Assembly (NCBI GenBank): GCA_965644265.1
Contig: OZ286468.1
Span: 28,892,001-28,956,000 of the forward strand
DNA length: 64,000 bases
Origin: Glycera tridactyla
Lineage: Eukaryota
Direction of reading: 5' to 3'
Below are positions 20,072-63,149 of this stretch, piece by piece (within the stretch, counting starts at the first letter, position 1; every line of letters begins with the position of its first letter). The translations under genes were made by a program, and so were the position numbers. Below the pieces are notes generated by a model. It did no database searches and was not told where the DNA came from. It was given only the letters and a program-made list of their open reading frames with translations.

Positions 20072-22079
20072 ACTTTTAGTGTGTGATTCTCATATCATCT
20101 CTCCTTACACTTAGTGTCTGTGATTTTCATATTCCGTGGGGGACCCAGGAGTCTCAAATATTACAACCCATGCTAAATGCATGGGCGTCTCAATTTAGCC
20201 CAGGTTGTGCTAACAAATCAACGGGAACGCTTTGAAATAACGCTTTCACTGTCTGTGATATTCGTATTTCACCTCCCATACCGTAGTTGACCAAGGACTC
20301 TGAAATAGATAACCTAACCTGTGCTCAATGCACGGGCGTCTCAATATAGCCCAGGCTGTGCCAACAAATCAATAGAAACGCTTTGAAATAACACTTTTAG
20401 TGACTGTGATTTTCATAATTCATGTGCATCTAAATATACCAGAGACTGACATTTTGCGGAGCGATGGTGGGCAAAAATGCCCAAGGGGTCATGGCAAGAT
20501 GGGCATTTTGGAAAAATGTTGGGCACACTGCGATTTTCGTTGGGCATATGACGAACGACACAAATTTGATCAATAACAATAACAGTGAATGAGTGGATAA
20601 AAGTGGATATTTATTGCATGAAACATCAAAATATCAACATATCAGATCACTGCCTGATTACAGATATCATTTCAAATTTCCTGTTGCAAAATTCACTGCA
20701 AAAATCATCCATCCCACTCAGCAACATAAACACAACTAGAAAAGTCTCGCAAGAAATTTAACTACAGATCCCCCCCCCCCCCCCATTCCCGTCCACACAC
20801 AATCAAAAATTGGTACAGAATTGGATTCAATCTGGTTTGATTTCTCACCAGGAGGACAAACTATCAACTCCAAGCAAACCACTGGTCATTTTCCTCCCTC
20901 ATCATATATTGCTCTCCAACTACTGTGAGAAATGATTTACTGTTGCAATAAAGAAACTCACTGGTGGCTGTAGTTTTCTAATGACAAAATTCACAACATG
21001 AGTCTCACCCATACACTGGGCTATAAAATCACAACTAGAAAAATCTGGCAAATGAATTTACAAGTATATTCCTCCACAGCTTTGTAACAAACATGGCTAA
21101 AAACACCCCTGAGAAAAGCATTTTGGAGTCCACAGGCCTTGTCAAGATACAAGATACAGGATCATTATTTAGTGCAGACATCAACAGTTCCGGACATGGC
21201 AATAGAAGAACAGAATAAAAATAAGGCCATAGGCCTAATCTCACACTGCATCCTGTGTTTTGTTTTCAATTGGACCATATTTTTGAATGAAATACTCATG
21301 AAACTAAATATGTGTTTTTTTGAGATTGGTTGTAGGTTGATGGATGTGCGGAACCATGACGGTACTAGATTAAATCTCGGAATAACTTCGACCTTTTCAA
21401 GGGCATGTTACAGAGACAGACACCCCATGATTTACAAGTGTAGCCAAGATTCAAGTTACTGGATTCACCCATATATCAACCTTTTTTTCACCGGGAGATG
21501 GCAAGACAGAGTCAAGAAGACTCATAACATTGCATGGAAAAAGATACAAATTCACTTGTTGCCATACTACAGGGAGATGGCAAAAGGAATCAGAGGCAGT
21601 CATTGTATGATATTGCAGGAAGGAGATGCAATTCATCATTTGTCAAGAGTGGTATCAAAAAGGCAAGTTGAATGTAATAAATGCAAAATATAAAGTGTAT
21701 CAATCTTCAAACTGTTACTTTATCAGTATGACAAAATTTGATTCAGTAAATGCCTGCCTGTATAACACAACTATGAAAGTTTTCAGATAATTATCTGAAA
21801 TCAGATATTTTGCATCGATAGCTCACATTTTCAGATATTTTGTCCATAATGAAAATTTCTGGAAGAAGACTGATTTCAGATATTTTTCATGATAGTGACT
21901 TTCATCCCTGACTAGTATTGCTTCTCACCACACGTACAGACTATCAACTTCACGCAGCTCCACTGAACATAAACAACTAGAAAAGTCTGGCAAGAAATCT
22001 AACTACATATCCTCCCCCAACACACATACACTTGAAAATTGGTACAGAATTGGATTCAATCAGGAGAAAATGCCTGGTA

Positions 22080-22223
22080 CAGTGAAACCTGCAACGAGAC
22101 ACCAAAATTCAGTCTCTCAATAGAGATGGTCTCATTGGAGGTATATTGAATATGTTGACTAGAAAAGTGGTCTCCTGTTAGAGGTGGACTCTCATCGGGG
22201 GTCTCTTGTTGCAGGTTTCACTG
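22080..22223. mobile_element. Tc1/mariner MITE nested in the hAT element
   Basis: TA|CAGTGAAACCTGCAAC ... GTTGCAGGTTTCACTG|TA: 16-bp perfect TIR, TA TSD, 144 bp. Confidence 0.85.
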
Positions 22224-22523
22224 TACAGTATAATACTTTTGGGTTGATCTCTCACCATTGGGACAAACTATTAACTCATGGGCAACGCCATTGGTCATTT
22301 GCCTCCCTCATCTTACATCGCTCTCCACATAATGGGCCAGCATATTAGAAATGGTTTGCTGTTGTGATAAAAGAAACACCCTGCTTGCAGTTGTTTTCCA
22401 GTGACGCACACTGGGGTATTAAACTCGACTAGAAAAATCTGGCATCAAAACTTACATAATGATTACTACATGTAGTAACACTGATTTTGGTTTCTCACCA
22501 CAGGGACATGCTACCAAGCAACA

Positions 22524-24859
22524 CTACTGGCTATCGTTGTTTCTCACCATATTTCGTGACCCCAGAAGATGCCTTCTTCGGAGTGCGCGCCACTTTTCCA
22601 ACACATCTCGAGAAAACTTTTCATATTCAGACCCTTCAGGGCTGGAATCATCCCTGTCAGGTGATTCGAGTTTCACCTTCATCAGCTGGCAGCATGTGTT
22701 GGGGTCGATGTTTGCCCTTCTGATAGTCGTAATGGCATTCTGCACACTGAAATCTCTCTCACAGTCTGCAGTGTGCACAGGCAAAATAAGTGCAATTCTA
22801 GCCAACGTGAGTAGATTCGGAAACTGTGTGCCATGGTTTATAGCAATTTGCTGCCACAGTTCCCTCATCTGGTCTCGGTAGTAACCATGTTCTAGTACTG
22901 CCCGTTTCAGCCGCCTCCATTCCTCTAATGCCTCATCACGATCAATGATCGGGGCGCATGTTTTGCCGATCAATGCGTCTTTGCTTTTGGGTTTCCAGGC
23001 GTGCGTCCTCTCATTTCCGAAGAAATCCAGGAGTGTGACCAGTTTGTCAGTGCCCCAGTCATCAAGGTCCTTCTCAGGGAGCAGGGAGATTGGTCTGAGG
23101 CCAAGGACGCTGAATGCAGCCATCAACGATTGTTCTGGGAACCGCGATTTCAAATTTTGAACTAAGGCCTCCACATACGCACATCGGAGGTTCTGAAGAT
23201 TTGTTTTTGTTTTTTGTATTTTGTGCCCCATGTAATTTTCTTTGTCAGGTCTATTTTCCCACTTCTCCATCTGACAGCCAGCTGGTACATCTGGTAGGGT
23301 GAACTTTTCCAGGTCTTTCAGGCAAAAATGCAGTTCAACCTTGATCACGGCAACATCCACGAGCTGCTTCTGAAAAAGCAGCTGTAGTTTGGCGACGATT
23401 GGAATGACATCCTCCATGAGGTGTAATAGGAACAGGAAGCGTTCGTTTGTGATTTCTCTATAAAGACCAACAGCCTTGGGGTCCTTCAAGTCAGATGCTC
23501 CAAAATACATCAGGAGTGCCTCAACGGTTCGGAAGATCGTATGCAAGGCCTCAAAGAAACTTAACCACCTGACTTCAAACACCTCCCGATATTTGAGCTG
23601 TGGGCTGTCCAGGATTTGTTGGATTTGTTGCATGTCATGCCTTTTACTCGATGCATATTTGAAATAATAGTATATATTTGTAAGAGTGTGAACAAATTCA
23701 TCAATAGTGTGAGTGACTGGCTCACCAGCTGCCTTGCTAGCCTGTGAAGTAGCAAGTGAAATTCTGTGGGCACCACAATGAATGTCACAGATATGAGCAT
23801 TCTCTCGCAAAAAATGTCCAGCTAGGCCTTTGCCATGACTAGTCATCGCACTGGCCCCGTCAGTACCAAGCCCGAACACTTTGGTTGCAATATCAACCCC
23901 CCGATCACTCAACTCTTTCTTTATTGCCCTGAAAACTGATTCTCCCGTGCCAGAAAATACTTCAACATCATTCAAAAACAATACTGACACATGCATAAAT
24001 GAGTTTACTGTTATGGCCCTGATGTCAAGTTTCTTTTTCACAGTAACATCCGTGCTCTCATCACATAAGATAGCAATATGAGTGGCATTTATCAACTTCT
24101 CAGTAGTTCTTTCATCGATGGCATCTGCCATGCACTGCAAGATCTCTTTCGCGGCTCGACTACTCTCGTACTTCACAGAGTCAGTGACATCGAGATGCTT
24201 AATGTGAGGGCAGCCAGTAGACTTGACTAGCTTGATGAGGCTGGGATAATCACTCAAAGGCCTATTCTGTTTAGCAATGTAATGAATGATCTTTAATGCT
24301 TCTAGAATGCCTTTCTCTTCATTCGTGAGAATCTTGCTGACAACCTTCGGCATCGCCTGAAACTGTTGTTTCGATCTTATCGCTTGCAGATGATCAGGGC
24401 TCTGAACATGCCTACTCAGAGTACTAGTCTTGAAATTCATTGTGCCCCGAACCATAGCGTTCTTTTGATTGAGACAGAAATGCACACAAATGTCACAGGA
24501 CATGATTTTGTCTTTAATAGAATACCGTAACCAGTCATACTGGGCAAGCCATTTATGATAAAAGATACCTGTGTGAGTCTTATCTGGATTTTTTGTGCTT
24601 GGTCGAGTCTCGCCACTGGTGCCAGGCTGAGGTGCCACACTGGTGCCTGCCTGAGGGTCTATGCTGGTGCTTGGCTTGGGGTCTACACTGGTGCCAGACT
24701 GAGCGTCCATGCTGGTAAACGGCTTGGGGTCCACACTGGTGCCAGACTGAGCGTCCATGCTGGTGCACGGCTTGGGGTCCACACTGGTGCCTGACTGCGG
24801 TTCCTCGCTGATGCCTGTCGGTCTCTCATGCAGCCCATCATCCTGCTTGGTTTTGTGTC
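22524..24859 (-). CDS. hAT transposase exon 2 (ZNF862-like: TTF-type zinc finger, DDE core, hATC dimerisation domain); spliced product 801 aa, uninterrupted
   Basis: Acceptor TTTTATTTTGCAG|GA at 24860/24859 matches phase 1 of exon 1 and joins in frame to ORF 22524..24782; motifs WL..CDIC..H..H, CDESTD, TDGASAM, HCGAHR, RWLS, TADCERDFS. Confidence 0.92.
24616..24795 (-). repeat. 24-bp coding tandem repeat (about 8 units) in the transposase N-terminus
   Basis: CTGGTG anchors every 24 bp from 24616 to 24784 (CTGGTA at 24712); peptide TSVDPKPC/TSMDAQSG alternating. Confidence 0.9.
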
Positions 24860-24938
24860 CTGCAAAATAAAGGAAAAAAAGATCTGTTGAATATTTTGAT
24901 GATTAATTGATCTGGTCTGAGTGTGGGTGTGGGGGTGA

Positions 24939-25514
24939 CAGAGCTGCATCCAGGCCGCGCCTTGGCAGGATTTACGCAAAAAAACAAACATTGGCACAAT
25001 TCGAATATGACTGCGCTTTTGTCGAATTATCTTCGCGATTTGACCAGTAAACTGCGTCACAAACCTGTATTACATCATGTTTAATCTGATAAAATCCGGT
25101 GATATGACTCGTGGCAGCCATAGCCCAAGGTGCGAAGATGACAGCGATTTGTCTTCTCAATTCTGATTGTCTCGTAGAAAGGTAACCGGTTGATCTCGGC
25201 CAATCAGCGCGCATTTCAAATGACTTCAAACTGCACAGTTTGCCGAATATCCGTGAGATGGCGAACATTCATCGAATGAAACGACTTTTCTCAGCGCAAC
25301 CCCATGTTCCGAGATGATAGTCGGTACTAATGGTGGGTTGGGTATAGACATCGTTTTGGCGGAAGAAATGTGTTCTGTGCCGATTTTGGCGTCATTAGAA
25401 ATTCGGTGTTTCTGTTGGCCCCCAATTTATCGGGATTGGCGCTATTTTTTCACAGATAGGGGGCCAATTAGCCCGAAATTGGCCCCACTTGATGAATTCC
25501 TGGATGCAGCTCTA
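24939..25514. mobile_element. Non-autonomous hAT-like MITE nested in the transposase intron
   Basis: TIR YAGAGCTGCATCCAGG (24939-24954 and 25499-25514); flanking GGGTGA at 24933-24938 and 25515-25520; CpG-rich interior; no coding capacity. Confidence 0.8.
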
Positions 25515-27852
25515 GGGTGAGGGTGTGGGGGTGGGTGTGGGTGAGGTGGTGTGGGTGTGGGGTGATCTGGGTGTAGGGTGAGGTGGTCTGGGTGTGGGGT
25601 GAGGTGGGTGTAGGGTGAGGTGGTGTGGGTGTGGGGTGATGTGGTGTGGGTGTGGGTGAGGTGGTGTGGGTCTGGGTGTGGGGTGAGGTGGTGTGGGTGT
25701 GGGGTGAACTGGGTGGTGTGGGTGTGGGTGAGGTGGTGGGGGTGTGGGTGAGGTGGTGTGGGTGTGGGGTGATGTGGTGTGGGTGTGGGGTGAGGTGGTG
25801 TGGGTGTGGGTGAGGTGGTGTGGGTGTGGGTGAGGTGGTGGGGGTGAGGTGGTGGGGGTGAGGGGGTGTGGGTGTGGGGTGAGGTGGGTGTGGGGTGAGG
25901 TGGGTGTGGGGTGAGGTGGTGTGGGTGTGGGGTGAGGTGGTGTGGGTGTCGGGTGAGGTGGTGTGGGGTGAGGTGGTGGGGGTGTGGGGTGAGGTGGGTG
26001 TGGGGTGAGGTGGTGTGGGTGTGGGTGAGGTGGTGGGGGTGAGGTGGTGTGGGTGTGGGGTGAGGGGGTGTGGGTGTGGGGTGAGGGGGTGTTGGTGTGG
26101 GGTGAGGTGGTGTGGGTCTGGGTGTGGGGTGAGGTGGTGTGGGTGTGGGTGAGGTGGTGTGGGGTGAGGGGGTGTGGGTGTGGGTGTGGGTGTGGGGTGA
26201 TCTGGGTGTAGGGTGAGGTGGTCTTGGTGTGGGGTGAGGTGGGTGTAGGGTGAGGTGGTGTGGGTGTGGGGTGATGTGGTGTGGGTGTGGGGTGAGGTGG
26301 TGTGGGTCTGGGTGTGGGGTGAGGTGGTGTGGGTGTGGGTGAGGTGGTGTGGGGTGAGGGGGTGTGGGTGTGGGTGTGGGTGTGGGGTGATCTGGGTGTA
26401 GGGTGAGGTGGTCTTGGTGTGGGGTGAGGTGGGTGTAGGGTGAGGTGGTGTGGGTGTGGGGTGATGTGGTGTGGGTGTGGGGTGAGGTGGGTGTGGGGTG
26501 AGGTGGTCTGGGTGTGGGTGAGGTGGTGGGGGTGAGGTGGTGTGGGTCTGGGTGTGGGGTGAGGTGGTGTGGGTGTGGGGTGAGGGGGTGTGGGTGTGGG
26601 GTGAGGTGGGTGTGGGGTGATCTGGGTGTAGGGTGAGGTGGTGTGGGTGTGGGGTGAGGTGGTGTGGGTGTCGGGTGAGGTGGTGTGGGTGTCGGGTGAG
26701 GTGGTGTGGGGTGAGGTGGTGGGGTGAGGTGGGTGTGGGGTGAGGTGGTGTGGGTGTGGGTGAGGTGGTGTGGGTGTGGGGTGAGGGGGTGTGGGTGTGG
26801 GGTGAGGGGGTGTTGGTGTGGGGTGAGGTGGTGTGGGTCTGGGTGTGGGGTGAGGTGGTGTGGGTGTGGGTGAGGTGGTGTGGGGTGAGGGGGTGTGGGT
26901 GTGGGTGTGGGGTGATCTGGGTGTAGGGTGAGGTGGTCTTGGTGTGGGGTGAGGTGGGTGTAGGGTGAGGTGGTGTGGGTGTGGGGTGATGTGGTGTGGG
27001 TGTGGGGTGAGGTGGTCTGGGTGTGGGTGAGGTGGTGTGGGTCTGGGTATGGGGTGAGGTGGTGTGGGTGTGGGGTGAACTGGGTGGTGTGGGTGTGGGT
27101 GAGGTGGTGGGGGTGTGGGTGAGGTGGTGTGGGTGTGGGGTGATGTGGTGTGGGTGTGGGGTGAGGTGGTGTGGGTGTGGGTGAGGTGGTGTGGGTGTGG
27201 GTGAGGTGGTGGGGGTGAGGTGGTGTGGGTGTGGGGGTGAGGTGGTGTGGGTGTGGGTGAGGTGGTGTGGGTGTGGGTGAGGTGGTGGGGGTGAGGTGGT
27301 GTGGGTGTGGGGTGATCTGGGTGTAGGGTGAGGTGGTGTGGGTGTGGGGTGATCTGGGTGTAGGGTGAGGTGGTGTGGGTGTGGGGTGATGTGGTGTGGG
27401 TGTGGGGTGAGGTGGTCTGGGTGTGGGTGAGGTGGTGTGGGTCTGGGTGTGGGGTGAGGTGGTGTGGGTGTGGGGTGAACTGGGTGGTGTGGGTGTGGGT
27501 GAGGTGGTGGGGGTGTGGGTGAGGTGGTGTGGGTGTGGGGTGATGTGGTGTGGGTGTGGGGTGAGGTGGTGTGGGTGTGGGTGAGGTGGTGTGGGTGTGG
27601 GTGAGGTGGTGGGGGTGAGGTGGTGTGGGTGTGGGGTGAGGTGGTCTGGGTGTGGGTGAGGTGGTGTGGGTCTGGGTGTGGGGTGAGGTGGTGTGGGTGT
27701 GGGGTGAACTGGGTGGTGTGGGTGTGGGTGAGGTGGTGGGGGTGAAGTGGTGTGGGTGTGGGGTGATCTGGGTGTAGGGTGAGGTGGTGTGGGTGTGGAG
27801 TGAGGGGGTGTGGGTGTGGGGTGAGGTGGTCTGGGTGTGGGGTGGGGTTGGG
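25515..27852 (+). repeat. G/T-rich satellite, 20/21-bp unit GGG(G)TGAGGTGGTGTGGGTGT, with higher-order duplications
   Basis: Plus strand almost only G/T; variant markers recur about 720 bp apart (GTCGGG 25948/26670, TGTTGG 26090/26811); GAACTGGG at about 25707, 27078, 27478 and 27707. Confidence 0.97.
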
Positions 27853-27923
27853 ATGACTGCCCACCACTTTCATTTTCACAAGAAGTCCTAAAACTTTGAT
27901 ACAAAAATGAAAAAAATAATTAC

Positions 27924-27993
27924 CTGTTGTGAAGAATGTAATGGACATCTGCTTGGATCGTCCATCATCAATTTTCCTTTTTTTGGGAGGCAT
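27924..27993 (-). CDS. hAT transposase exon 1
   Basis: MPPKKRKIDDGRSKQMSITFFTT plus one G (phase 1); NLS-like PKKRK; donor G|GTAATT at 27924/27923. Confidence 0.8.
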
Positions 27994-29092
27994 ACTGATG
28001 AGGAAAACTCAATCAAAACTGCTGACCTTGGTCCAACGAAGGCACGCTTGCGAGGTCGATCAGCTGTACTTCGTTCGTGATCGCCACTAGATGGCGACAT
28101 TTTATTGAGTTTGAATTTGAATTTGATGGCAATAAAAACAACAAAAACACAGTTGAAACTGCTGAAAATCATTTATTAAACATCCCGTTTCCCGACAAAC
28201 TTTTATCACGCGCGAATTCGTGAAAAAACGATTTATTAGAAGTGGAAATGGAGAATAATACCGATACGAAACTCGGCCACGAAACGATGCCATATCCAAG
28301 ATGGCGGCCGGTGAGTTTTCTCGGGCAAATGTCGCTTCAGCATCACGATTTCTCTCGAATATCCGATAATTATTACCACAAATAAACTTTCAGATTCCGT
28401 CATTCGTTCGCGCATCTTCTCGCGCACAACCTCGGACAATTTGCGCGTTTCGACGTGATTATCGGCACTATGCGCTTCGCGCTCAAAATGTCAGTCTCTG
28501 TATACCATAGCTGGTGTTCATGAGAAGTTAAACCAAAAACTATAAATAGGAAAACAAAGCAATCAACTGATCAGTGAACCAACCAAGTGTCACTTCAAAA
28601 GACTTCTTTGTGTGTTTTCTGTGAATTTCATAAATCACCTTCCATATATAATTGGATTTCCACTGGTGTGTACAGACGTGCTTCAAATACCACTGAGTAT
28701 CCAACAAGATAACCTCATATTTCAGTGAAGATCCGACAGGAAGCCGCCTGGGAGTTTTATAGTCTCTTGATTTAATTGATTAAGATCGTATTTCGTAAAC
28801 TGATCAACAAAAGTACGTGTCCTGTTGATCCCTTGAAATTCACCTGATGGTGACGCAGTCGTTGTTGGCTTCACCACCGGGTGTCAGTTATTGCAGCATG
28901 TGTCATCGAGTGACATCTTCCGTCTACTACCATCGCGCGGTAGTTATCACGCACGCTAGAAGAGGGCGATAATGATTCAGTGAAGCGCCACCTGTACAGC
29001 CATGCTCCTGGAGGTCGTGTCAGACAGCAACCAGTGGTGCAGCATGGTGGCGCTCGGCTCTACTCGCGTGTGACGTCATTATGTGGGGTAAC

Positions 29093-41964: not shown

Positions 41965-42023
41965 CACAAACAAAAACAAAAACACAATCAACTGTAAGAA
42001 CTGTCCTCAGACCACAGTGCGCA

Positions 42024-45000
42024 CTACACATAATTAGCATGTTTGCTAGTACACGAGAAGACGGGAGCGCCATATCGCTCTGGCTGACTACCAGCAGTCG
42101 CCCTTGTGGTCCTATGAACCCAGTGATCATCATCATCATCAGAATCAGATGAACTGTCTGCTGCTACAGGTGGAAATGCCCTCTCGGCTCTGGGCCACTG
42201 GACTTGTATGGCAGGATCCTCATCACTGCTCTCCTCAGAAGACTCCTCCGTATCGGAGACTCTTTCATGGGCCATTCTGACTTGGCAAGGTGGGAGCAAA
42301 TTCGGTAGAGGTGGTTTGGCTGGCTCCTCTGCATGGCAAACTTGGAGGTCTTTGCGAGTGACTGTTCGCTCTGCTCCAAAACCATCAGCAGGCTCCACTT
42401 CGTAGACATCATTATCACCAACCTTGCTGACAATCTTGAACACCCTGTCCTTCCAAAAATCTTGGATCTTTGCTCGACCAGGGGTGAACAAGCACAGGAA
42501 AACACTCTCGCCGATTGGCAATGGTGCATCCACCGCCTTCCGATCAAAGATCTGCTCCCGGGCCAGAGCCGCAGTCCTGAGCTGTTGATTAGCTTGTTCA
42601 GAAGTCTTCTGCAGCCTCGACTGGTGAACTGATAACCAGTCGTCTTCCCCTTTGGCATCATCAACCCCTAGTCGGATGTCAGAGGGCATCTTTGGATCAT
42701 GTCCAAACATCAAGTAGAATGGTGACATTCCTGTCGAAGCGTGTGGAGTTACATTATAGGCATTGACCGCTTTCTTGATGGCCTCATGCCAGCGCTTCTT
42801 TTTCCAGCTGGTAGGCTACGCAACAGGTTATGCAGCGTTCGGTTGAATCGCTCCACCCGACCATTTCCTTGAGGATGCCCAGGGGTTGTCCGAGACTTGG
42901 TGATCCCATACCACATGCATAACTCAGCGATCATGTTCGAATCAAAATTCTTACCACGGTCACTGAATCCGCAGGGGAACTCCATAGTGGAAAAACCACT
43001 CGTTGACAAGGATCCTAGCCACTGTTGTGGCTTTCTGGTCCCTTGCAGGGACAGCAACAGTGTACTTCGTGAAAACATCAGTCATGACCAGCACATGTTC
43101 TAAACCATTTGATGATGGCTCTAGCGTTGTAAAATCCACGGCTAGCACCCCCAGAGGTCGTGATGCAAGTAGGCTCCCCATCGGCGTCCGGGTCTTCACA
43201 TGAGGCATTTTTGCCAAGGTACACAGTCCGCAGTCCTCAAGCCAGTCCTTGACATCTCCATACAGACCAATCCAGAAGTACTTCTGTCTGATCAGCGCAT
43301 CAACCCGGTCAGTGCCATGGTGTCCCAAATGGTCATGATGCTGCTCTATCTGGGACAAGCAGTTGCTTACACTCTCCCCGAACCCTGTCTTGCAACCTCT
43401 TGTATAGCACTCCGTCTTGGAACACAAGCTTTGGCCAATGCTTGAGCAAGAGTTTGGTCTTTCGGGGCAGTGCCTGCCACTCTCTCCCCTCTGGTTGGCT
43501 TCCTGCTTCAAAAGCCTTGAGAAGAGGCCTCAGAACTACATCCTGGAGTTGCAGCTTGCGCATGGACTGTGGGGTGTACTGCGGGATGGTTGTGACTGCG
43601 TGAGGTACAGTACCATCTTGCCCAACATGAGCAACGTGACCTTTGGACAAATGTGCCGCAGCCTTCACTAGATTCCTTCTCAAAACAAGGGGCACCCCAG
43701 TGCTGTCAAGGACAGCTGCCATAACCTCGGCACACTTATCTGATGTCACAGCAGTCGCGGAATGGCCAGGCCTAGGCTCCTTTTTTCCCTTGGTCAGATA
43801 CAAGCCCAACACGTCCACAATCTCATGGAGGTCATCGTCATCAGAAAGTTCAGGACGTGGCCCCAACCTGGATAAACCATCAGCATTGCCATTCTTGATC
43901 CCAGGCATATACTTGATTTGAAAATTGAATGGGGCCAGGTCTGCGACCCATCTCTGCTCAATAGCCGGAAGTTCGGCTTTTGTCTGGATGTAGGTCAGTG
44001 GGTTGTTGTCAGTGTAAACCGTGACTGTTGACCCAAGCAAATAATCCCTGAATGTCTCAGCCATTCCCCACTTCAGTGCGAGGAGCTCGAGTCTCTTGCT
44101 GCTATAGTTCTGCATATTCCTCTCTGTGGGACATAGCCCTCGACTTGCAAAGGCCACTACTCGCTTCTTGCCCTCTTGATCCTGCGACAAAACTGCACCT
44201 AAGCCATGAAAGGATGCATCTACCTCCAGTACGAATGGCAGACTATAGTCGGCATAAACCAAAATTGGAGCAGTGGTCAAGGCTTCTTTCAGTTGGTCGA
44301 ATGCTCTATGGCACTCTTCCGTCCAGGCAGAAGTGATGGATGGCGATCATGCTTTGCGTCCTGACTTTTGTCCACTGTTGACTTCAAAAGGGCATTACAC
44401 TCACCAATGAGCTTGTGCGGAGGGGCAGCAATTGCAGCAAAACCTTCAACATAGCGCCTATAGTATGATGCTAGACCCAGAAATGCTCTAGCCTCTCTCA
44501 CCGTGGTAGGTACTGGCCAGTGCTTCACCACACCAATCTTGTCGGGATCTGTTGCGACTCCAGCTGCAGAGATGTGGTGTCCCAGGTACAAGACTTCTTT
44601 CTGGAAAAAAATTGCACTTCCTCAGTTCCAGTTTTAGCCCAAACTCTTGCAGCCTCTGGAAAACTCTTTCCAGCCTACCCAAGTGATCCTCTACATTCAT
44701 TGAAAAGATGATAATGTCATCAAGATACACAAGAAGAATGTTGAAAACATCACTGTCGAATGCCTGTTGCATGAGATGCTGGAAGGTCGAGAGAGCATTG
44801 CAAAGACCAAATGGCATTTGCAAGTATTCAAACAATCCGAGGGTGTTGTGAGTACAGTCTTTCGACGATCTTCTTCGGCTACCTCCACCTGGTTATATGC
44901 AGACTGAATGGTCAAGGACTGAGAACACCTTAGCACCACTCAGTGCATCCATCGACTCCTCAATACGAGGCAGCGGAAAGGCATCCTTCTTCATTTTTGC

Positions 45001-46028
45001 GTTGACCTGCCGGTAATCCACGCACAGCCGCAGGTCCCCAGACTTCTTACGAACAAGGACTATGGGACTGGTATAGTCACTTTTGCTTGGCTGAATGATT
45101 CCCTTTTTCAGCAAGCCCTGGATATGGGTGCGCACCTCCTCAAATTGATTTGGTGGTATCCTGCGATAGGGCTGCCTGACTGGGAAATCATCTGTGATTG
45201 GAATGCAATGCTTTGTGGCACTGGCATGGCCCAAGTCCAAGTCGTCAGCTGCGAATACGTGCCTGTACTTGGCAAATACCCCCATTACCTTTCGGCGCTG
45301 TTCTTCAGTCCTCGAAAACCCAGATAGATCCAACTCCTCCAGCCATTCACTGGCATCGCCCGGCATATCTCCACTGCCAGAGGTTACAACAACCTCTGTC
45401 GAACTAACGCACAAATCAACTACCGGGGGCACGACATCCACACAGAGGGCAGAGCCAATGGGTGTCCTTGGCTTCAACCAGACATCCTGCTCTCCAAAGT
45501 TCACAATGCGAACATAACACACACCAGAGGTACTATCGACTACCATCCGGCAGAGACTGATGCCTCCTGGAAGGGGTGTCATCAGTGGCTCAACCAGAAC
45601 CTCTGCCCCAACCACATTTCCTGTGACAGGCACATCAACAACCGACCCAGCAGTCACCCGAACAGACTTCAGCCCCGCGATCCAATAACACCCACTCTCG
45701 ACAAGACACTCTTTCTTGTCGGTGTTGTCGGAAGATGCTTGTATTCGGGCAGGTCCTGAAGAACATTTTACCAACCAACCCATCACACGCAGAGGGGGAG
45801 TGTCTCGTTACCAAAATTCCACGAGAAGGCAAAACATGTCCGTTGACCTCAACATCCATGGTTAAGAAGCCTTCGCATGGCATCTCGAGCCCGTTTGCAG
45901 CTCGCAACTTCAACCAGGACAGAGGAAACTTGGGGTCGCCTACCAAATGACGGAGATGCCTCTCAAAAAACTTACTGGTGACTGTTGGTCACAACAGAAC
46001 CAGTGTCAATCAGACAAGACACGGGTAA
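42024..46028 (-). pseudogene. Gypsy pol (PR - dUTPase-like linker - RT - RNaseH - IN - GPY/F) in several frames
   Basis: CLIDTGS (45999-46007); RLCVDYR, KDAFPLPRIE, YLDD; EVDASFHGLGAVL, YSSKRLELLAL, TDNNPL; HDHLGH..CGLC, AVDF, SDRG, RVERFN. Confidence 0.93.
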
Positions 46029-48009: not shown

Positions 48010-51000
48010 TTTTTTTTTTTTTTTGTTTGAAAAAGCTTTATTTGCAGCATAGCAATATAAACAGCACATTACATGCATGCAAAAACAAATAAAGTAGATT
48101 GCCAATCATTATTAAGCAAGATGGATAAGAAAAAAAGTTCAAATAACAAGTAATCCCGAGATAGATAGAAGTATACAATACATCAATCAAGACTTGGACA
48201 TCAGGACAGAGAAAGAGATAAGTGTGACAAATAATATAGAAAATAAATTTGTATCAAGAGCAATTGTAGACAACCAAAACATTGACAAGAATTATTTGCG
48301 CGAATCTCACGAATTTCACGAAAGATCAGGCAGTACGTCAAAGTAAGTGACGTAGCTATAATTGGACACACCAGTACTGACCATGATATATAATTGGCAT
48401 ACATATGAGCGACCTGACACTAGCATATTAAGCTAGCACTATGATATTACAATATTATAATAGCGGCTGTTTTGGTACTATTTCAGGAATTTTTTAATTG
48501 CCATTTTGAAACTAATATTAGTAGGTAACTCACGAAGATGAGGCGGCAAGCCATTCCAGTTCAGCGCACCTCGATAACGGATATTTGCAGAAGCGAACAC
48601 CGTGTTGCAAACATTGATATATAGATCATCACGGAATTGTTGTCTAGTAACACGTTCACTTACATCGCCAACATGTCTGAACATATATGAAAGGGAAGTC
48701 TCAGAATTGTCATTAACAGCACGCTGTACCTGAATTGCTACATTCCTGTCACGTACTATATGTAGTGGTGAAACACCGAGTCTCTCACGCAATGCAGAGG
48801 CGGAGTTCGAGGTAGTGTTATAGCCAGCAACAGTACGTAGACAATTGTTTTGTGAGACCTGAAGTTTTTGGCACAGAGTGATACCAGCACTTCCATAAAG
48901 AAAGTCACAATATAAATAAAGTGGATGAATTAAAGCAAAATACAATTGCAATGCACGCGCTTCGGTGAGATAGTTTCTAATCCGTGAAAGTGCTCTACGA
49001 CGGACAAATATCTTTCCAAGTAAGTAGTTAATATGTTGCTCAAAGGATAAGTGTTCATCAACAATCATGCCTAAATATTCAAATTTGTCCACACGGTAGA
49101 TAGTTTTTCCATTGAAGTCAATATTATTGAGTGTAATAGTCCGAACTTGAGGTCTAGTTCCAAAAATCATGATGTTAGATTTATCGACATTTAATGTCAA
49201 TTTCATGATATCAAACCAATTCGCAACCCGCATAAGATCGCGTGTCAACGTAGCGCATAGCATTTCTTCATTCGGGGCACTGCAGAATATGGCAGTGTCA
49301 TCTGCATATAATAAGATTTTTGTGTCTGTCAAGACATTCGGTAAGTCATTTACGTATGATACGAAAAGAAGAGGTCCAAGTATGGACCCCTGTGGGACTC
49401 CATGAGATATGCTCAAGTGGTCAGATATGGCATTATTAATACGTACAGTTTGATGGCGATTGCATAGATAGGACCTAAACCAATTCACTGCACTATGGCG
49501 TAAGCCAAGCCTCGATAATTTATTGACTAGAATTTCATGATTCACAGTGTCAAAGGCTTTTTTCAGATCCAGGAAGAGTACTCCAGTGGGACAGCCATTA
49601 TCTGCTGCAGAATAGACGTTGTCCAAGAGAATAGACAAGCATGTCCCAGTGGAGCAACCCTTCCTGAATCCGAATTGGCAATTAGAAAATATATCATAAT
49701 TGTCAAAATAATTATACAATTGCGTATGAATTACACGTTCCAATATTTTACTGAGGCTAGGCAAGATGGAGATTGGTCGGTAGTTATTCATTTCATAGAG
49801 CGAGCCACTCTTGAATAATACATTAACCGTAGCCAACTTCCACCTTGAGGGAAAAATAGAAGAACGCATAGAAAGATTACATACGTGTAATAAAACAACT
49901 AGTGCAGAGTCTGGCAATAGCTTTAAGACATAAGACGTAAGGCAGTCTGGACCAGCTGCAGCACTGTTCTTCATATCCTTGATACTTGAACGGATATCAT
50001 GAATATCAATAGGTCTGAACTCAAAAACAGGTGCTCTATAAGGGAGAAACTCAGATAGATCAGGGTTGTCATCGGCAAAATTTGATGCTAGGTTTGGGCC
50101 TACATCGGCAAAGTGACGATTAAAGAGATTGGCTTTACCTAAATCTGATTCGATCCCATTTATTGTTGGGATCACACAATTTTCAGAGGTAAGGGGCCAT
50201 AATTTCTTCAATTCGCGCCATAGCTTCTTGTGATCATTGGCATGTGAATCGAGGGTACCTAATATATATCCCTTTTTGAGGCTGGTTTTGAGACGATATC
50301 GTTGACGAAAGGCTTCCTTTTTGAGGACAAGATTAACTAAATTAGGATTCGAATTATAAAGTCTAGATCTATAGGAGCATAAATCTACAAGGCTTAAAAA
50401 GTCATTATTTATCCACTGGGCACCACGGTCATAAACCGTTTTGGTGACAAGTGGTGCAATAGCATCAAGATTTTTAGTCAATATTTCCTCGAAGCCGTTA
50501 GTAACAGTGTCAATATCATTAGAATCCAACAGGGGGCCCCAGTCAACGGCACTAAGATAGCGTGATAAATTTTCTTTTGTCATCTTTCGCCAAGACCTAA
50601 ATGTGGCTACGGTTTTCTTTTTTGGCAGCTTAGTCCGATGTCTCGTTGTATACACTAGCTTATGGTCACTTAGACCCAACTCAAATGTCCCTGAGTAGCT
50701 GAAATACTCTGTACGAGAGACAAGAATATGATCTATTAAAGAACTAACAGTGGGACATACATGTGTCGGATCAGCAATTATTTGAGAAAGCGACTGACGA
50801 CGAATAAAATTTGAATACTTTCTGACTTTCGGGTCTCTTGGCTTTAGCATATTAATGTTGATATCACCGAGAAGTACAGTGTCAAAGACACCAAGAGGAG
50901 TCATGTCATCTAGTAAAGTACTAATTGTTGTTAAACTTCGTTCCAAATTTCCGTCAGGTGGTCGATAGATCCCAGCCATAATTGTCGGTCGACAATTCGA

Positions 51001-51660
51001 AAGTTTCCATTGAAAAGCCAGAATCTCAACATCCTGATCACAAAAGAGTTTACACGTACTAAGATCAATATTATATATAGGGTTGAAATAGCATAAAATG
51101 CCGCCGCCACATGATTTTCCACTGGCAGCTGTTCTATCACTCCGGATTAACGAGTATCCTGGGATATCAAATTCTTTATTGGCAATGGAATCATTGAGAA
51201 AGGTCTCTATTAAAAAAAGAAAGTCCAATTTACTTTTGCTCAAAAAAAGTCTTAATTCGTCAATGTGTCTAGTTACACTGCGAATATTTAAGGCTGCAAT
51301 CTTGATTCCAGGCAGGTTAGAAAGACATGCATAAGCATATTCAAAGTCGGACCTGATGTCCAGTGAGGGTAGTACAAACGTGTTACGTCGGCGATTGTTC
51401 ATGTATGATGGAATGAATACCGCTGTATCAGAAAATAATTATGATAAAATAAACAATTTAAGTAGAAGAGAAGACTAGGGAGAATGGTCGGGCAGTGGGA
51501 ATTGCAAGGTTAGATAATATACATCGAGTTCGCTTCAAACAAAAATGATAATAGGTGCTGTGATTGATAGAAAATGAAACCAAAAAGGTGGAAGTGGACA
51601 ATAAATGACTAAAGTGAAAAACTGCAATTCAAGAAGCAGCCATTTTCAATGGTTTCCGTG
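48010..51660 (-). mobile_element. CR1/L2-group LINE A, probably full length, no ORF1 visible
   Basis: Poly(A) tail 48010-48024 with AATAAA just upstream; intact ORF2; YY1-like AAAATGGCTGC at 51636-51646; 5' end approximate; no TSD found. Confidence 0.75.
48478..51402 (-). CDS. LINE ORF2 (AP endonuclease plus reverse transcriptase), intact, 974 aa
   Basis: EN: LNIRS, IETFL, YRPP, GDININ, IDHIL, SDH; RT: YRPISIL, QFGFRKG, LDLKKAFDTVNH, GVPQGSILGP, YADD. Confidence 0.96.
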   Translation of the reverse strand: MNNRRRNTFVLPSLDIRSDFEYAYACLSNLPGIKIAALNIRSVTRHIDELRLFLSKSKLDFLFLIETFLNDSIANKEFDIPGYSLIRSDRTAASGKSCGGGILCYFNPIYNIDLSTCKLFCDQDVEILAFQWKLSNCRPTIMAGIYRPPDGNLERSLTTISTLLDDMTPLGVFDTVLLGDININMLKPRDPKVRKYSNFIRRQSLSQIIADPTHVCPTVSSLIDHILVSRTEYFSYSGTFELGLSDHKLVYTTRHRTKLPKKKTVATFRSWRKMTKENLSRYLSAVDWGPLLDSNDIDTVTNGFEEILTKNLDAIAPLVTKTVYDRGAQWINNDFLSLVDLCSYRSRLYNSNPNLVNLVLKKEAFRQRYRLKTSLKKGYILGTLDSHANDHKKLWRELKKLWPLTSENCVIPTINGIESDLGKANLFNRHFADVGPNLASNFADDNPDLSEFLPYRAPVFEFRPIDIHDIRSSIKDMKNSAAAGPDCLTSYVLKLLPDSALVVLLHVCNLSMRSSIFPSRWKLATVNVLFKSGSLYEMNNYRPISILPSLSKILERVIHTQLYNYFDNYDIFSNCQFGFRKGCSTGTCLSILLDNVYSAADNGCPTGVLFLDLKKAFDTVNHEILVNKLSRLGLRHSAVNWFRSYLCNRHQTVRINNAISDHLSISHGVPQGSILGPLLFVSYVNDLPNVLTDTKILLYADDTAIFCSAPNEEMLCATLTRDLMRVANWFDIMKLTLNVDKSNIMIFGTRPQVRTITLNNIDFNGKTIYRVDKFEYLGMIVDEHLSFEQHINYLLGKIFVRRRALSRIRNYLTEARALQLYFALIHPLYLYCDFLYGSAGITLCQKLQVSQNNCLRTVAGYNTTSNSASALRERLGVSPLHIVRDRNVAIQVQRAVNDNSETSLSYMFRHVGDVSERVTRQQFRDDLYINVCNTVFASANIRYRGALNWNGLPPHLRELPTNISFKMAIKKFLK

Positions 51661-52349
51661 GACTATTGGGTCTTTTTTATCGTGAAAAACATTTTCTCCA
51701 TGCGAAATTCCCAATTCATGTTGCATTAGGATACAAGACAAAATAAATAAGAGGTTTGATTGATTCAAATATGGTGTTTATGTAATATTTCTCGATGAAA
51801 CTGTATCTTGGCATTTTTTGCAGTTTCTCAATATTTCGACTATTATATAAATAGCTACAGCTGAAAAACGAGCCTGGTGACCCCAACTTTTTTCTCAGGA
51901 AATCTGATCTATACCTCAATAGAAATAATCATATGAAATTTCAAGGATGTGGCAAATTTATAAAAAATTGCCTCATTCATCCTTAAATAGGGTACATCCT
52001 TAGGCTTACGCCTACTCCTCCCCCAGTGCCTGGTTACCATAGTTACATGAAAATATGACACAATTTTCTTCATTCATTCGATTGTTGTTTGGACTTGCTT
52101 TTACATTTCAGTTTCAGCGCCAGTTACATGAAGTATAGTATGAATCCGGAAATTTCAGTGGGAATTAAAAATTCACCTCTCTTATGTTTTAAATTTCAGG
52201 TTTGTTTCTAAGGAAAAAAGAGAAGTGTCCAGGGATGGAAAGAGATATGTAAAGTGACAGCGACCGGGCACCAGGTTCACAATATTCGACAATGATAAAC
52301 ACCAGAAATAAAGACATTCTTACACCACAACAGAAAAGCATATGGACTA

Positions 52350-55300
52350 ACATCAGTCTTGCTTTTGGTACAACATTTTCCTCATCATATTCTTGAATGC
52401 ATTGATAGACCTCGCATTGCGTATTTCAATTGGGAGATTGTTCCAACATCGAGGACCATAAACCGATATACATTAGTCCCCATATTTTGTTTTGGTTCTG
52501 GGTACAATCAGGTTATTGTCAGTCATCGCACGTGTTTGTCTGTCATGTTGCAGATCTAGCGTATTCAGGGAATCATGAAGTCTTTTACATTTGATCTTGT
52601 TGTTGATTATTTTATATAAAAATATTGTATAATTCATACAGCGTCTATCCTCAAGTCGAAGTAGTTCTAACGATAAGTGCATGTCCATAGTATGAGTGCG
52701 GCGACCAACTTGGAGGATGATCCTACATGCACTATTTCGCAGCATTTGGAGCTGATCAAGAGATTCTTTGGAGGTATGAATAAGTAAAATGTCACCGTAG
52801 TCCAACAATGGCAATATTGATGACTTGTAGAGCATTAAAGTCACATTTTCGCCTATGAGTGGTCGGATTCTTCTCAGTACTGACAATTTCTTTTTAGACT
52901 TTTTGACAATATGTTCTACATGTGTATTGAATTTCAGGTTTTCATCTAGTATCATTCCCAGGTACTTAAACGTTGGAACTTGTTCAAGTTGTTCATTGTT
53001 CATTGACAGTACCAGATTTGTATTTCTACGGTAGTGAGTGCTATGGAAGACCATCGCCTTGGTCTTGCTCACATTAAGAGTCAGTCTATTTGATATCAGC
53101 AAATTTTCAAGGTCATATAGGTCTTCCTGCAACTTCATAGATACCTCCTCAACATTACAGCCTGAGTAGTAGATTGCTGTATCGTCAGCATACATGGCCG
53201 TTTTAGAGTTCGCTATACATGAGGGCAGGTCATTAATATAAATTATGAAGAGCAGGGGCCCCAATATCGAGCCCTGGGGAACTCCAACACTTATATTTCC
53301 AAAATTTGATAGTTTCCCTGCAAAGGATGTTATTTGCTTTCTATTTTGAAGATGATTTCTAAACCAATGTTGGACACCATCAGACACCCCATACTGTCCC
53401 AGTTTCTGAAGCAGTATCGGGTGACTGACGGTGTCAAAGGCCTTTTTAAGATCCAAGAACACCATACCCACCTTTCCTTGATCAAGTTCGATATGTATAT
53501 CATTCAATACACTTGATGCAAGTGACAGTTGACAAACCGCTTCTGAAACCAGATTGCGCATCATCAAATCAACCCGTTTCTTGGAAATACTAGAATTTTC
53601 TAGAGAGCTGGGAGTATAGAAATTGGCCTATAATTTGAAACATCGCTTTTTGATCCTTCCTTAAATAATGGTGTCACTTTAGCAGTTTTCCAGTCATCTG
53701 ATATGTCCAATTGGTATAGCTAATGCACTAACACATATTTTAAGAAATCTGGTATTTATCCCATCCAGTCCGGTCGCCTTTGAAATACTCAATTTCCCCA
53801 GTGCATCTCGAATTTTACTTTTCTCTACTAATCTGAAATGGAAATCCAAATCTGGTCCCAGGATTTCAGAGAACTTATCTTGATTCAATTTTGGAATTTG
53901 ATTTGCCAACTTAGCCCCAATTTCACAGAAGAAATTATTAAAATAGTTGGATATCATTTCAGGGTCATCAGTTCCATCAATGACTGGCGTGGAACTTCTA
54001 CCCGATTTTTTACTGGGGAGCAACTTAGCGAGAATGTTCCACAATTTCTTGCAATTTCCTTTGCTGTCTAATTGCATTGTTGATAAATTCCTTTTGAAGA
54101 TTTTTACTAAGCGTGCTGCACTGATTTCTCAAAATCCGATATCTCTCCCAGCTCTCATTTGTTTTATTACTATTGAAAATCAGTTTTGCTGATTCACGAG
54201 CATCCTTCATAGATACATAGTCATCATTCATCCATTCTGGTAACCTGCCTCTAAATTTCATATTCCTATAGGGAACATGAATATCACAAACAGGTATGAA
54301 AATGTCCTTGAAATTATCCCGGGCTTCACATGTGTTCACACTGTTGAGTACAGAGGCCCATGAAAGGCGCTCTGTCTGTTCTAGTAATAAACTGGGACTA
54401 AAATTTCTGAATGATCTGGCATAGACGATCTTGGCAGGTTCCTTTTTGTTGACACACTTACGACAGGTGAATACCATCGCATGGTCAGAGTTACCCGTGT
54501 CAATAGTGTAGGCATGTGAAATATAATTTTCTCTATTATGCAATATCTGATCAATTATAGTACTTGACATGGGCGTGACTCTGGTGGGGATCTTGATCAG
54601 GGACTCTAAATCCAAAGCACACATGAGATATTTCATTTCTCTGTTAGCTGTTAGATGTAATTTTTGAAAGTCTATGTTATAATCTCCGATTATGAATACC
54701 TCTCCTGGTCCTTTTTGGTAGATGTTTAATATGAAATCTTTAATGATTGAACAGCATGACTTCGTATTCCCGTATGGAGGTCTATAAATATTCAATACAT
54801 AAATGGGTCTGGTATTTTTCAGAATAATCTTTATGGTGAGACACTCCAGGTCTATTGTACTACAACAGAAATCAGAACTTAGTTCATATTTCAAACTAGA
54901 TTTGACATATAACACTATTCCGCCACCAGAGTCTCTTCTAGAAAAATCTTGTCTATCTAGTCGCTCAATTTCATATCCTGGGAGGGATATTTCACTGTTA
55001 CAAACAGACATATTCAGAAAAGTTTCAGATATGGACAAGTCCAGGCAGGTGATATGCAATATATGTTTTATTTCATGTAATTTATTGTAGAGATGGCAAA
55101 TATTTTGATGTCCAATACAAATACCCTTCAGTCCCACTATAGCATCGAGTCTTACACTATCTGTCATTTATATATGACTGACCATTTTTACCAAACAATT
55201 TTCAACAAATAAACCCAGTATGTATCCTGAAATGCTTTTGGTTTCTAAATTCTTGTTGCAGTATGTTTCAAAGATCGGATTGATATTCATTCTCACCATA

Positions 55301-60828: not shown

Positions 60829-62560
60829 ATTGATTGATTGATTGATTTTTCTTGATTTTTCTTCGTCATTGTATAAACATAATACAACAATTGCCCCAGC
60901 TTGGGGCTTTCCCGGGTTGACGAATACTACTAAGTTCACATCAAATTATAATAATGATAAATGAAAATGCATGATAATGATTTCAAATAATATGAACATT
61001 TGTAAATAAACATTAAGACCAAATGAAACCTGTTTGTCATCTGTTCAAGTGATTTCAATGAAGACAATAGCTCTAGAATTGTTAGTGAGATATGATAATG
61101 AAATGAGATGTGATGAATTGAGATGAATGGTGGATGATGTAAATGGCAAAATGACATGATTCAAAAATGGTTCAAAATATATTGTTATTGTCTTTCAGTG
61201 TGATCAGTATTTCTTTTTGAGATCAAGAATTTGTTTCAATTTAAATGGAGAAAGTTTTTTAATTGATCCTTAAAAACTTTTGTTTCACAGGGTCCAAAAT
61301 TTTCATATCTTTTCACATAACCATTCCACAATTTTGGGCCTCCGTATCTAAAAGATCCCTCTACTTGTTTCAATCTTGGCACTCTTTGTTTCAAAAATGG
61401 ACGGGTTTTGGATCTTGTGGAATAAGTATGTGAAGCATCAGTTAGAGAACATAGAGGTATATATTGGCTATGAACATCACCCATCAATATTTTATTTACA
61501 TGTATGAGAGTATGTTCTTGTCTGCGACAATCCAGGTATGGCATATTTAAGTTATGATGTATATCAGTAGTACGTGTCAAAGGTACACTTTTGGTTATTA
61601 TTCTGAATGCCTTGTTTTGAACCAATTGTAACTTATTAGCATCTGCCACACCTAGATTGTCGTAGACTATATCACAGTAATCAAATATTGGCAGAATGAG
61701 GGCCCTGTAGAGCATGAGGGATGTGTTTTGATTTAGCACATCCCTCAGTCTCCCGAGGACCCCCACCCTACCAATAGTTCTACTTCTCATATATTCGGCA
61801 TGTGCAGAAAATTTCAATAAACTATCCAGAATAACCCCCAGATATTTAAATTCTGGGACCTTTTCTATTACTTGATTTTCAAATTGTAAATCAAAATCAT
61901 TCTTAGATAATTGTAATCGTGTCCCAAAGATCATCATTTTGGTTTTTTTCAAGTTTAGACTTAATTTATTTCTGCACAACCAAGTATGGGCTTCTAATAA
62001 TGCATCCTCCAGTTTAGATTTTAACCGGATAGGATCATTATCAGAAACCAAAATCGCGGTGTCATCCGCATAGAGATTCACACTGGGCCCATTTATATAC
62101 TTGGTTACATCATTTACATATATTGTGAATAATGATGGGCCCAGTATGGATCCTTGCGGCACCCCGCAATTTATCGCACAATCACATGAGTAAACTCCAT
62201 TTACTTTAACATTGCATTTTCTATCAACCAGGTAACTTTCAAACCATGATGTGGTCAACTCATTGGATCCATATCTAGTCAATTTCTTCAATAGAATCCC
62301 ATGGTCCACCGTGTCGAATGCCTTCTTGAGGTCAAGGAAGAGTACTCCACTGGTCATATTTTTTTCAATATTTAGATACAACTTATCCAGGAATTCTAAC
62401 AAACATGTCCCAGTGGAGCACCCCCCCCCCCCCCCCCTAAAACCAGACTGCTCACGACACAGTAGACCATGGGCTTCAAAATAGTCTGATACTTGTGTAT
62501 GTACAATCTTTCCGAGAATTTTACTAACTGTGCTGAGAAGGCTAATGGAATACTTCAGTC
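60829..62560 (-). mobile_element. CR1/L2-group LINE C, 5'-truncated, RT frame 61236..about 62555 still open
   Basis: SISLLSTVSK, QSGFR, LDLKKAFDTVDH, GVPQGSILGP, YADD, GGPKLWN; probable (CAAT)n tail at 60829-60844 (3' end uncertain). Confidence 0.9.
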
Positions 62561-63149
62561 CGAAATGACCCATGTGGTGTCAAGAGGACGCTAAACAATA
62601 CTCAGTCAATCAATCAATCAATCTCAGGAGCATCCTCTTGCATGAATGTACATGCTTGAATTAACGAATGATATGATCCGTCTTTTAAAGTAGGCATGCA
62701 CAGGTCCTCATGTAAAGCAGCTGTACTGTAGTCTCGAGGCTTGCATGAGACTACAATGGACTAATCCAGCTGCAATAATCCAGCATCTCTCGGACTCATT
62801 GCTCCATAGAAAATATCCACGTAATCAAAGATTGGAACAATCAAACTCTTATAAAGCATGAGAGATGTCTCACGATCAAAAATATTACGTAGTCTGCTTA
62901 GCAGTTTAACATGACTTATAGTGTATACCACATAGTCATGATAGGTTAGCTCCTAAGCAGTCTCGGGTTACTGATTCGCTCATCTCGTTTTATCAGACCA
63001 ACATGTGAGCAGACAGACAGGCTCTCATGTGATCTAATGAGATTTTCAACCGCATGACTGGTTCCATGAGCTCTCGCGGTATTGTCATTTGATGCTGTAC
63101 CTGATTGATTTGTTTGGCTATTTGAAAAGGCTTGTAAGAGATAAACTGG

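Follow-up and report, generated by a model that had tools for sequence, protein, structure and literature searches.

The transposons Hermes, Ac and Tol2 leave a target-site duplication (TSD) of 8 bp, and the terminal inverted repeats (TIRs) of the hAT superfamily to which such elements belong are short (about 10-25 bp) and begin with YARNG. Two groups with shorter duplications, hAT5 with a TSD of 5 bp and hAT6 with a TSD of 6 bp, were named by Kapitonov and Jurka (Repbase Reports 2007), as cited in PMC12730594 and, for hAT5, in PMC9004415. Together with Blackjack they form one animal lineage (PMC12730594). hAT5 is found in invertebrates and fish, and its unusual mark is the 5-bp TSD (PMC9004415). 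In this study, we analysed a 64,000-nt stretch of the Glycera tridactyla genome (contig OZ286468.1, here C28; C28:28,892,001-28,956,000), which is called the window and to which positions without a contig name refer. At 20440-28500 it holds an element of 8,061 bp that ends in perfect inverted 17-bp TIRs. This element is very probably one copy of a young autonomous hAT family of the hAT5 kind, which would cut its target with a stagger of 5 nt (occasionally 6) and whose transposase gene, on the minus strand, would be spliced. It is a new and very young member of a rare, little-studied but known kind, not a new kind. The assembly that was scanned comprises 2.04 Gb in 207 contigs.

Borders of the element and its target-site duplications

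An earlier reading of the window from its letters alone (the sequence-only reading) had described perfect 17-bp TIRs, the TSD TATAC and 8-bp flanks that do not match. All of this was borne out: the two ends are fully complementary, TATAC adjoins both of them, and the left 8-bp flank differs from the right one (Table 1). With their length of 17 bp and their start CAGAG, the TIRs have the form that is general in hAT elements. The TIR sequence is exact in almost all genomic copies, and no further copy of the motif was found in the 64-kb window when up to 3 mismatches were allowed.

TSD lengths were determined for the 24 copies in the genome of which both ends were recovered, and 21 of these were informative. 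The TSD was exactly 5 bp in 18 of the 24 and exactly 6 bp in 3, and the other 3 insertions lie in CA microsatellites, where the length cannot be read. An 8-bp TSD was found in none of the 24 paired copies. The sequence-only reading had named 8-bp TSDs at other copies, or a single-copy locus in conserved synteny, as findings that would speak against it, and neither is the case, since the 18 five-bp and 3 six-bp duplications are accompanied by no eight-bp one and the element is multi-copy with unrelated flanks. The TSD of 8 bp that is usual for hAT elements is thus missing here, and it is this exception that defines hAT5 and hAT6. With 5-bp TSDs at 18/21 informative insertions and 6-bp TSDs at the remaining 3/21, the element fits the operational definition of hAT5, a placement that is made by the 5-bp TSD only. 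Target preference across the 18 sites is weak, that is A/T-rich and roughly palindromic, (T/G)-A-n-T-(A/C).

The 6-bp TSDs belong to the copies at C32:8,854,950, C18:9,376,221 and C4:91,469,480. At these sites the 5-bp comparison fails and the 6-bp comparison is exact, and all three TSDs begin with C. They are genuine and not 5-bp TSDs lengthened by chance, since, besides the failed 5-bp comparison, a 5-bp duplication with an extra base would have required another coincidence in each of the three cases. The copy at C32:8,854,950 is identical to the window copy in every stretch compared and has a 6-bp TSD, and the window copy has one of 5 bp. It is an evenly balanced question whether one transposase makes both the 5-bp and the 6-bp TSDs. 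If it does, the labels hAT5 and hAT6 would describe a flexible stagger of one type of transpososome, and the family would be a natural system for finding out what sets the spacing of hAT strand-transfer sites. The mixed 5- and 6-bp duplications are in any case a phenomenon to explain. In the searchable literature we found almost no treatment of short-TSD hATs, though they are listed in Repbase, and no biochemical or structural study of what makes the stagger depart from the 8 bp found in Hermes, Ac and Tol2.

The family therefore stands close to hAT5 but does not match it in every respect. It shares with hAT5 an autonomous hAT transposase, short TIRs and 5-bp TSDs, and it differs in that it also leaves exact 6-bp TSDs (3/21) and in that a satellite-filled intron would interrupt its transposase gene. 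Like hAT6, it has a shortened TSD, three of its copies have TSDs of 6 bp, and a miniature inverted-repeat transposable element (MITE) nested in its intron has a 6-bp repeat on either side. Unlike in hAT6, its main TSD length is 5 bp (18/21).

The predicted transposase and its probably split gene

Most of the predicted protein is encoded by exon 2. Residue numbers and protein searches refer to the exon-2 translation (window:22527-24857:-), and the two exons were handled separately. Exon 2 encodes a disordered N-terminal part, a zinc finger, an RNase-H-like DDE core with an insertion domain, and a hAT dimerisation domain. In Pfam, it matched the CCHH zinc finger zf-C17orf113 (residues 107-164, 1e-10), the dimerisation domain Dimer_Tnp_hAT at the C-terminus (1.8e-7) and, weakly, DUF4371. 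The relatives found in a word-based protein search are distant throughout: the best of them reach 36-39% identity, among them bivalve proteins annotated as 'C17orf113-like', 'TTF-type domain-containing' and 'zinc finger protein 862-like', and fish proteins that bear the name ZNF862 show 25-28% identity to the transposase. That the best matches point to bivalves fits a lophotrochozoan genome. In the alignment with 19 relatives, D266 and E267 (DESTD), D333 (GTDGA), C361 and H364 (C-x2-H), R430 and W431, and E700, R701, F703 and S704 (CERDFS) are invariant.

A search of the PDB chains with the single sequence gave nothing useful, whereas a profile of the relatives' alignment matched the Hermes transposase (4D1Q, 2BW3, 8EDG) at 2e-14. 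In this profile search each of the D, D, CxxH, RW and E blocks falls on its counterpart in Hermes, where the D, D and E residues are D180, D248 and E572. The AlphaFold model has a mean predicted local distance difference test (pLDDT) of 79 and a predicted template modelling score (pTM) of 0.71; its first 95 residues are disordered, a zinc finger of small beta/alpha form follows, and the core is well predicted. Among solved structures, Hermes chains were the only strong fold matches of this model (E 5e-10, TM score about 0.6 on the target). Fold matches to RAG1 and the P-element transposase were obtained only at E > 0.1.

The domains, the invariant catalytic blocks and the profile and fold matches to Hermes together identify the predicted protein as a hAT transposase in which every catalytic block is present. 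An RNase-H-like core with a helical insertion, a hAT dimerisation domain and the catalytic blocks, by which the hAT superfamily is recognised, are all found. What the sequence-only reading had said of the protein agrees with these results. The DDE/hATC frame that it called uninterrupted has 777 stop-free codons with motifs that are invariant and aligned to Hermes, its 801 aa follow from 70 + 2,333 coding nt, or 801 codons, and the ZNF862-type architecture that it saw recurs in the names of the relatives, 'C17orf113-like' and 'zinc finger protein 862-like'.

The likeness to Hermes of Musca domestica (PDB 2BW3, 4D1Q, 8EDG) lies in the fold and in the residues D, D, CxxH, RW and E, the last in an S/C-E-R-x-F-S motif. 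The two proteins are only about 15% identical, and Hermes has an 8-bp TSD and a BED-type N-terminal domain, whereas a C17orf113-type finger and a 5-bp TSD are found here. The domesticated vertebrate proteins ZNF862, C17orf113 and KIAA1586 have the same set of zf-C17orf113, DUF4371 and hAT dimerisation domain. They are single-copy host genes without TIRs, whereas the present element is mobile and multi-copy. A 48-nt tandem repeat of 3.8 copies in the coding sequence (24614-24797, minus strand) encodes a Ser/Thr/Pro-rich peptide in the disordered N-terminal part.

The start codon would be provided by a short first exon upstream of the intron. The donor GT of exon 1 lies at 27923-27922, the acceptor AG at 24861-24860 stands behind a strong pyrimidine tract, exon 2 begins at 24859, and the one-base overhang of exon 1 joins the long frame in phase (phase 1). 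The sequence-only reading had proposed an exon of 70 nt, an intron of 3064 nt and the correct phase. Its GT/AG ends, lengths and phase were all seen, and the junction itself, from 27924 to 24859, is a prediction that they support well. When the right ends of copies were compared, the ATG, the 70-nt length and the GT donor of exon 1 were kept in 13/13 copies, and in one young copy one K of the lysine run in exon 1 is replaced by N.

The peptide of exon 1 has a lysine-rich stretch followed by Q-x-x-I-x-F-F. It resembles the N-termini of many relatives, which start with M-P-P-K-K, have Q/K-x-x-I/L-x-x-F-F some residues later and are contiguous with the main frame. This likeness is suggestive. The pattern Q-x-x-I/L-x(1-2)-F-F after a lysine-rich start is common to exon 1 and to relatives such as P0008, P0010, P0023, P0029 and P0031, and in some relatives, for example with Q-K-R-I-T-S-F-F, it fits the canonical pattern of the proliferating cell nuclear antigen (PCNA)-interacting protein (PIP) box and may be such a motif.

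Four parts make up the intron: unique sequence of about 75 nt, a satellite of 2.33 kb, a MITE of 576 bp, and about 79 nt before the acceptor. The satellite ranges from about 0.84 kb to 2.3 kb across copies. Since its length varies even between otherwise identical copies, either it grows and shrinks at a higher rate than that at which point mutations build up, or the assembly has collapsed it. The three youngest copies are 8,061, 7,842 and 7,386 bp long, and their length differences are confined to the satellite-bearing part. The MITE belongs to another family, which is abundant in the genome (about 2,700 first-look candidates, 83-86% identity). It is flanked on both sides by GGGTGA, an apparent 6-bp TSD, but this hexamer recurs in the surrounding satellite. 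At 100% identity the MITE is present in the three youngest copies only and marks the youngest lineage of the hAT family. In a copy without it, at C32:27.5M (locus L041), the intron keeps the same ends, measures about 970 nt and contains a satellite of 840 nt.

Recent transposition and rival explanations

The left 301 bp of the element gave 14 matches in the genome at 98-100% identity, and many at 87-95% over the first 210-264 bp only, the left end yielding 462 first-look candidates. The right 301 bp gave 14 matches at 92-100%, and many more over the last 91 bp only. By pairing ends on the same contig, 24 elements were obtained, 14 of 5.1-9.5 kb and ten of 0.57-3.2 kb. There are 14 full-length copies in all (one rearranged), that is at least 13 beyond the window copy, which are 5.9-7.8 kb long. 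Non-autonomous derivatives of 0.57-5 kb have in common about 210-260 bp at the left and 91 bp at the right.

A six-frame search of the genome with exon 2 found 13 copies of the family. Exon 2 is open over its full length in 7 of the 13, which are 98-100% identical, three of them being identical or nearly so, and it is broken by stops, an indel or rearrangement in the other 6. In 2,440 nt of non-coding sequence (1,800 left and 640 right), the window copy has no difference from the copy at C32:8.85M and 4 differences from that at C28:34.9M. Other copies fall into several sub-lineages, 1-6% apart. The three near-identical copies lie at unrelated sites, each with its own TSD, and close to its junctions the sequence that flanks the window copy occurs only once in the genome. 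No empty site for the window insertion, in the form of a second copy of its 400-bp flanks across the junction, was found in the genome. Because the copies are near-identical and their flanks unrelated, transposition must have been very recent. Segmental duplication was considered as a source of these copies and rejected, since the junction-proximal flanks are unique and each copy has its own TSD. Three near-identical copies and seven clean open frames give good support to the earlier description of the element as recent and autonomous.

These findings make the family useful in two respects. The three practically identical intact copies offer a ready natural sequence for an excision or integration assay; use as a new transposon tool is speculation. 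For genome annotation, the findings show that DNA transposons were mobile very recently in this invertebrate genome, and that a large satellite can occupy a transposase intron and vary in length between otherwise identical copies.

The splicing, expression, present-day activity and biochemical mechanism of the element are what we infer, as follows. The short exon 1 most likely contributes the start codon together with an N-terminus that is rich in lysine and nuclear-localisation-like, and it would be spliced across the satellite-filled intron onto the one long exon. In the resulting protein the zinc finger would bind DNA, the Hermes-like DDE core with its helical insertion domain would carry the catalytic blocks, and the hAT domain would serve for dimerisation. 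If it works like Hermes, the protein would attach to the 17-bp ends and to the subterminal repeats and excise the element. The target would be cut with a stagger of 5 nt, occasionally 6, and not the usual 8. The 3'-OH ends would then be joined to the target DNA, as in Hermes, and gap repair would yield the 5-bp duplication.

Two results weigh against this account. The youngest copies have the longest intron, with the 2.3-kb satellite and the MITE, and this might impair splicing. In addition, a hidden Markov model (HMM) of the relatives' N-termini placed exon 1 only third among the 2,751 pieces of the six-frame translation of the window, with a non-significant E of 1.3. The long intron bears on the idea that the family was active very recently and is now silent or crippled, so that the window frame is intact and is not productively expressed, either through small-RNA silencing or because the 3-kb intron is removed wrongly. 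It is consistent with this idea that the right parts of the three youngest copies measure 3,643, 3,425 and 2,969 nt, compared with 1,548-3,269 nt in older copies, that the youngest copies share the nested MITE, and that exon 2 is broken in 6/13 copies. However, the copies with the MITE and the long satellite were the last to transpose, being 99.8-100% identical at three unrelated sites. The cargo was therefore no bar to mobilisation, although the transposase may have been supplied in trans. A family that has only just fallen silent is possible, and we think it somewhat unlikely. The weak HMM result bears on another reading, in which exon 1 is not used and translation starts at the first in-frame ATG of exon 2, about 35 codons in, to give a protein of about 743 aa from a transcript that is unspliced or spliced otherwise. 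All recognised domains are indeed in exon 2, and its first 95 residues are predicted to be disordered. On the other hand, the ATG, length and GT donor are conserved in every copy compared, the pyrimidine tract is strong and the phase correct, and the lysine-rich stretch with I/L-x-F-F stands at the start of many relatives in one piece with the main frame. An internal start is accordingly improbable, more so than recent silencing.

Two further readings are refuted. Database relatives bear the names of domesticated human genes and the frame is intact, as would be expected of a hAT-derived gene retained by the host, of the ZNF862 or C17orf113 type, that no longer moves. Such a gene is irreconcilable with perfect TIRs and a TSD, with 14 full-length copies at unrelated loci that have TSDs of their own, and with the presence of derivatives and of copies that bear stops. 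A different superfamily such as Transib, whose elements make 5-bp TSDs, would account for the TSD length; it is contradicted by the hAT dimerisation domain, by the profile match to Hermes, by Hermes as the sole strong fold with RAG1 only at E > 0.1, and by the hAT-like TIR start CAGAG. Both readings can be set aside with near certainty. The reading that we prefer is thus still that of a young autonomous family of the hAT5 kind with a spliced transposase gene.

Other features of the family and the window

One full-length copy, C34:59642648-59650225 (loci L007 and L038), is chimeric. Over the left 1.8 kb it is 99.1% like the lineage of the window copy, and over the right 640 nt it matches the C39/C29 lineage at 99.5%, which suggests recombination or template switching between subfamilies. 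The same genome holds 1,685 first-look candidates of this protein family at 28-39% identity, dozens of them open at 700-830 aa, and it is rich in related hAT families. At C26:49.25-49.30 Mb six related open frames are clustered in the manner of a tandem array, unlike dispersed transposons.

The coordinates of the features are listed in Table 1.

Table 1. Features of the hAT element and of its surroundings in the window
Feature	Position	Strand	Remarks
TSD TATAC, left copy	20435-20439		same 5 bases at 28501-28505
Left TIR	20440-20456	+	3' side of transposase gene; starts CAGAG; complementary 17/17 to 28484-28500
3' non-coding DNA, about 2.1 kb	20457-22523	-	downstream of stop codon; 91-100% in other copies
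Exon 2 and stop codon	22524-24859	-	777 full codons at 22527-24857, no internal stop
Intron (predicted), 3,064 nt	24860-27923	-	GT...AG ends
Nested MITE, 576 bp	24939-25514		other family; 16-bp hAT-like TIRs (CAGAG.../TAGAG..., 15/16)
G-rich satellite, 2.33 kb	25515-27848	+	GGGTGT-like; 21-nt and about 400-nt higher periods
Exon 1, coding part (predicted)	27924-27993	-	ATG at 27993; 70 nt: from the ATG, 23 codons and one base
5' non-coding region	27994-28483	-	presumed promoter and 5' untranslated region of the transposase gene; 94-100% identical among copies
Right TIR	28484-28500	-	5' side of transposase gene
TSD TATAC, right copy	28501-28505		directly abuts right TIR
Long terminal repeat (LTR)-retroelement RNase H frame	43336-44280
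Long interspersed nuclear element (LINE) frames	48481-51402; 52.5-55.2 kb; 61.2-62.6 kb		974-aa open reading frame (ORF) at 48481-51402; others at 52.5-55.2 kb and 61.2-62.6 kb

The non-coding ends contain short repeats. Within the left 110 bp there are five TGGGCA hexamers (20468-20550), and the right 95 bp contain three copies of GCGCGA (28406-28482). These subterminal hexamers are unlike each other at the two ends and are candidate binding sites for the transposase. A repeat of about 140 bp at about 21773-21910, in the 3' non-coding part, has 3,498 first-look candidates in the genome that are 90-96% identical, and within it 21786-21804 and 21870-21888 form an inverted repeat. The 140-bp repeat is an old nested MITE or short interspersed nuclear element (SINE), or else a fragment that has spread from this hAT family. 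The surroundings of the element are rich in transposable elements (42000-46000, 48478-55167 and 61236-62573), with LINE reverse-transcriptase and endonuclease frames.

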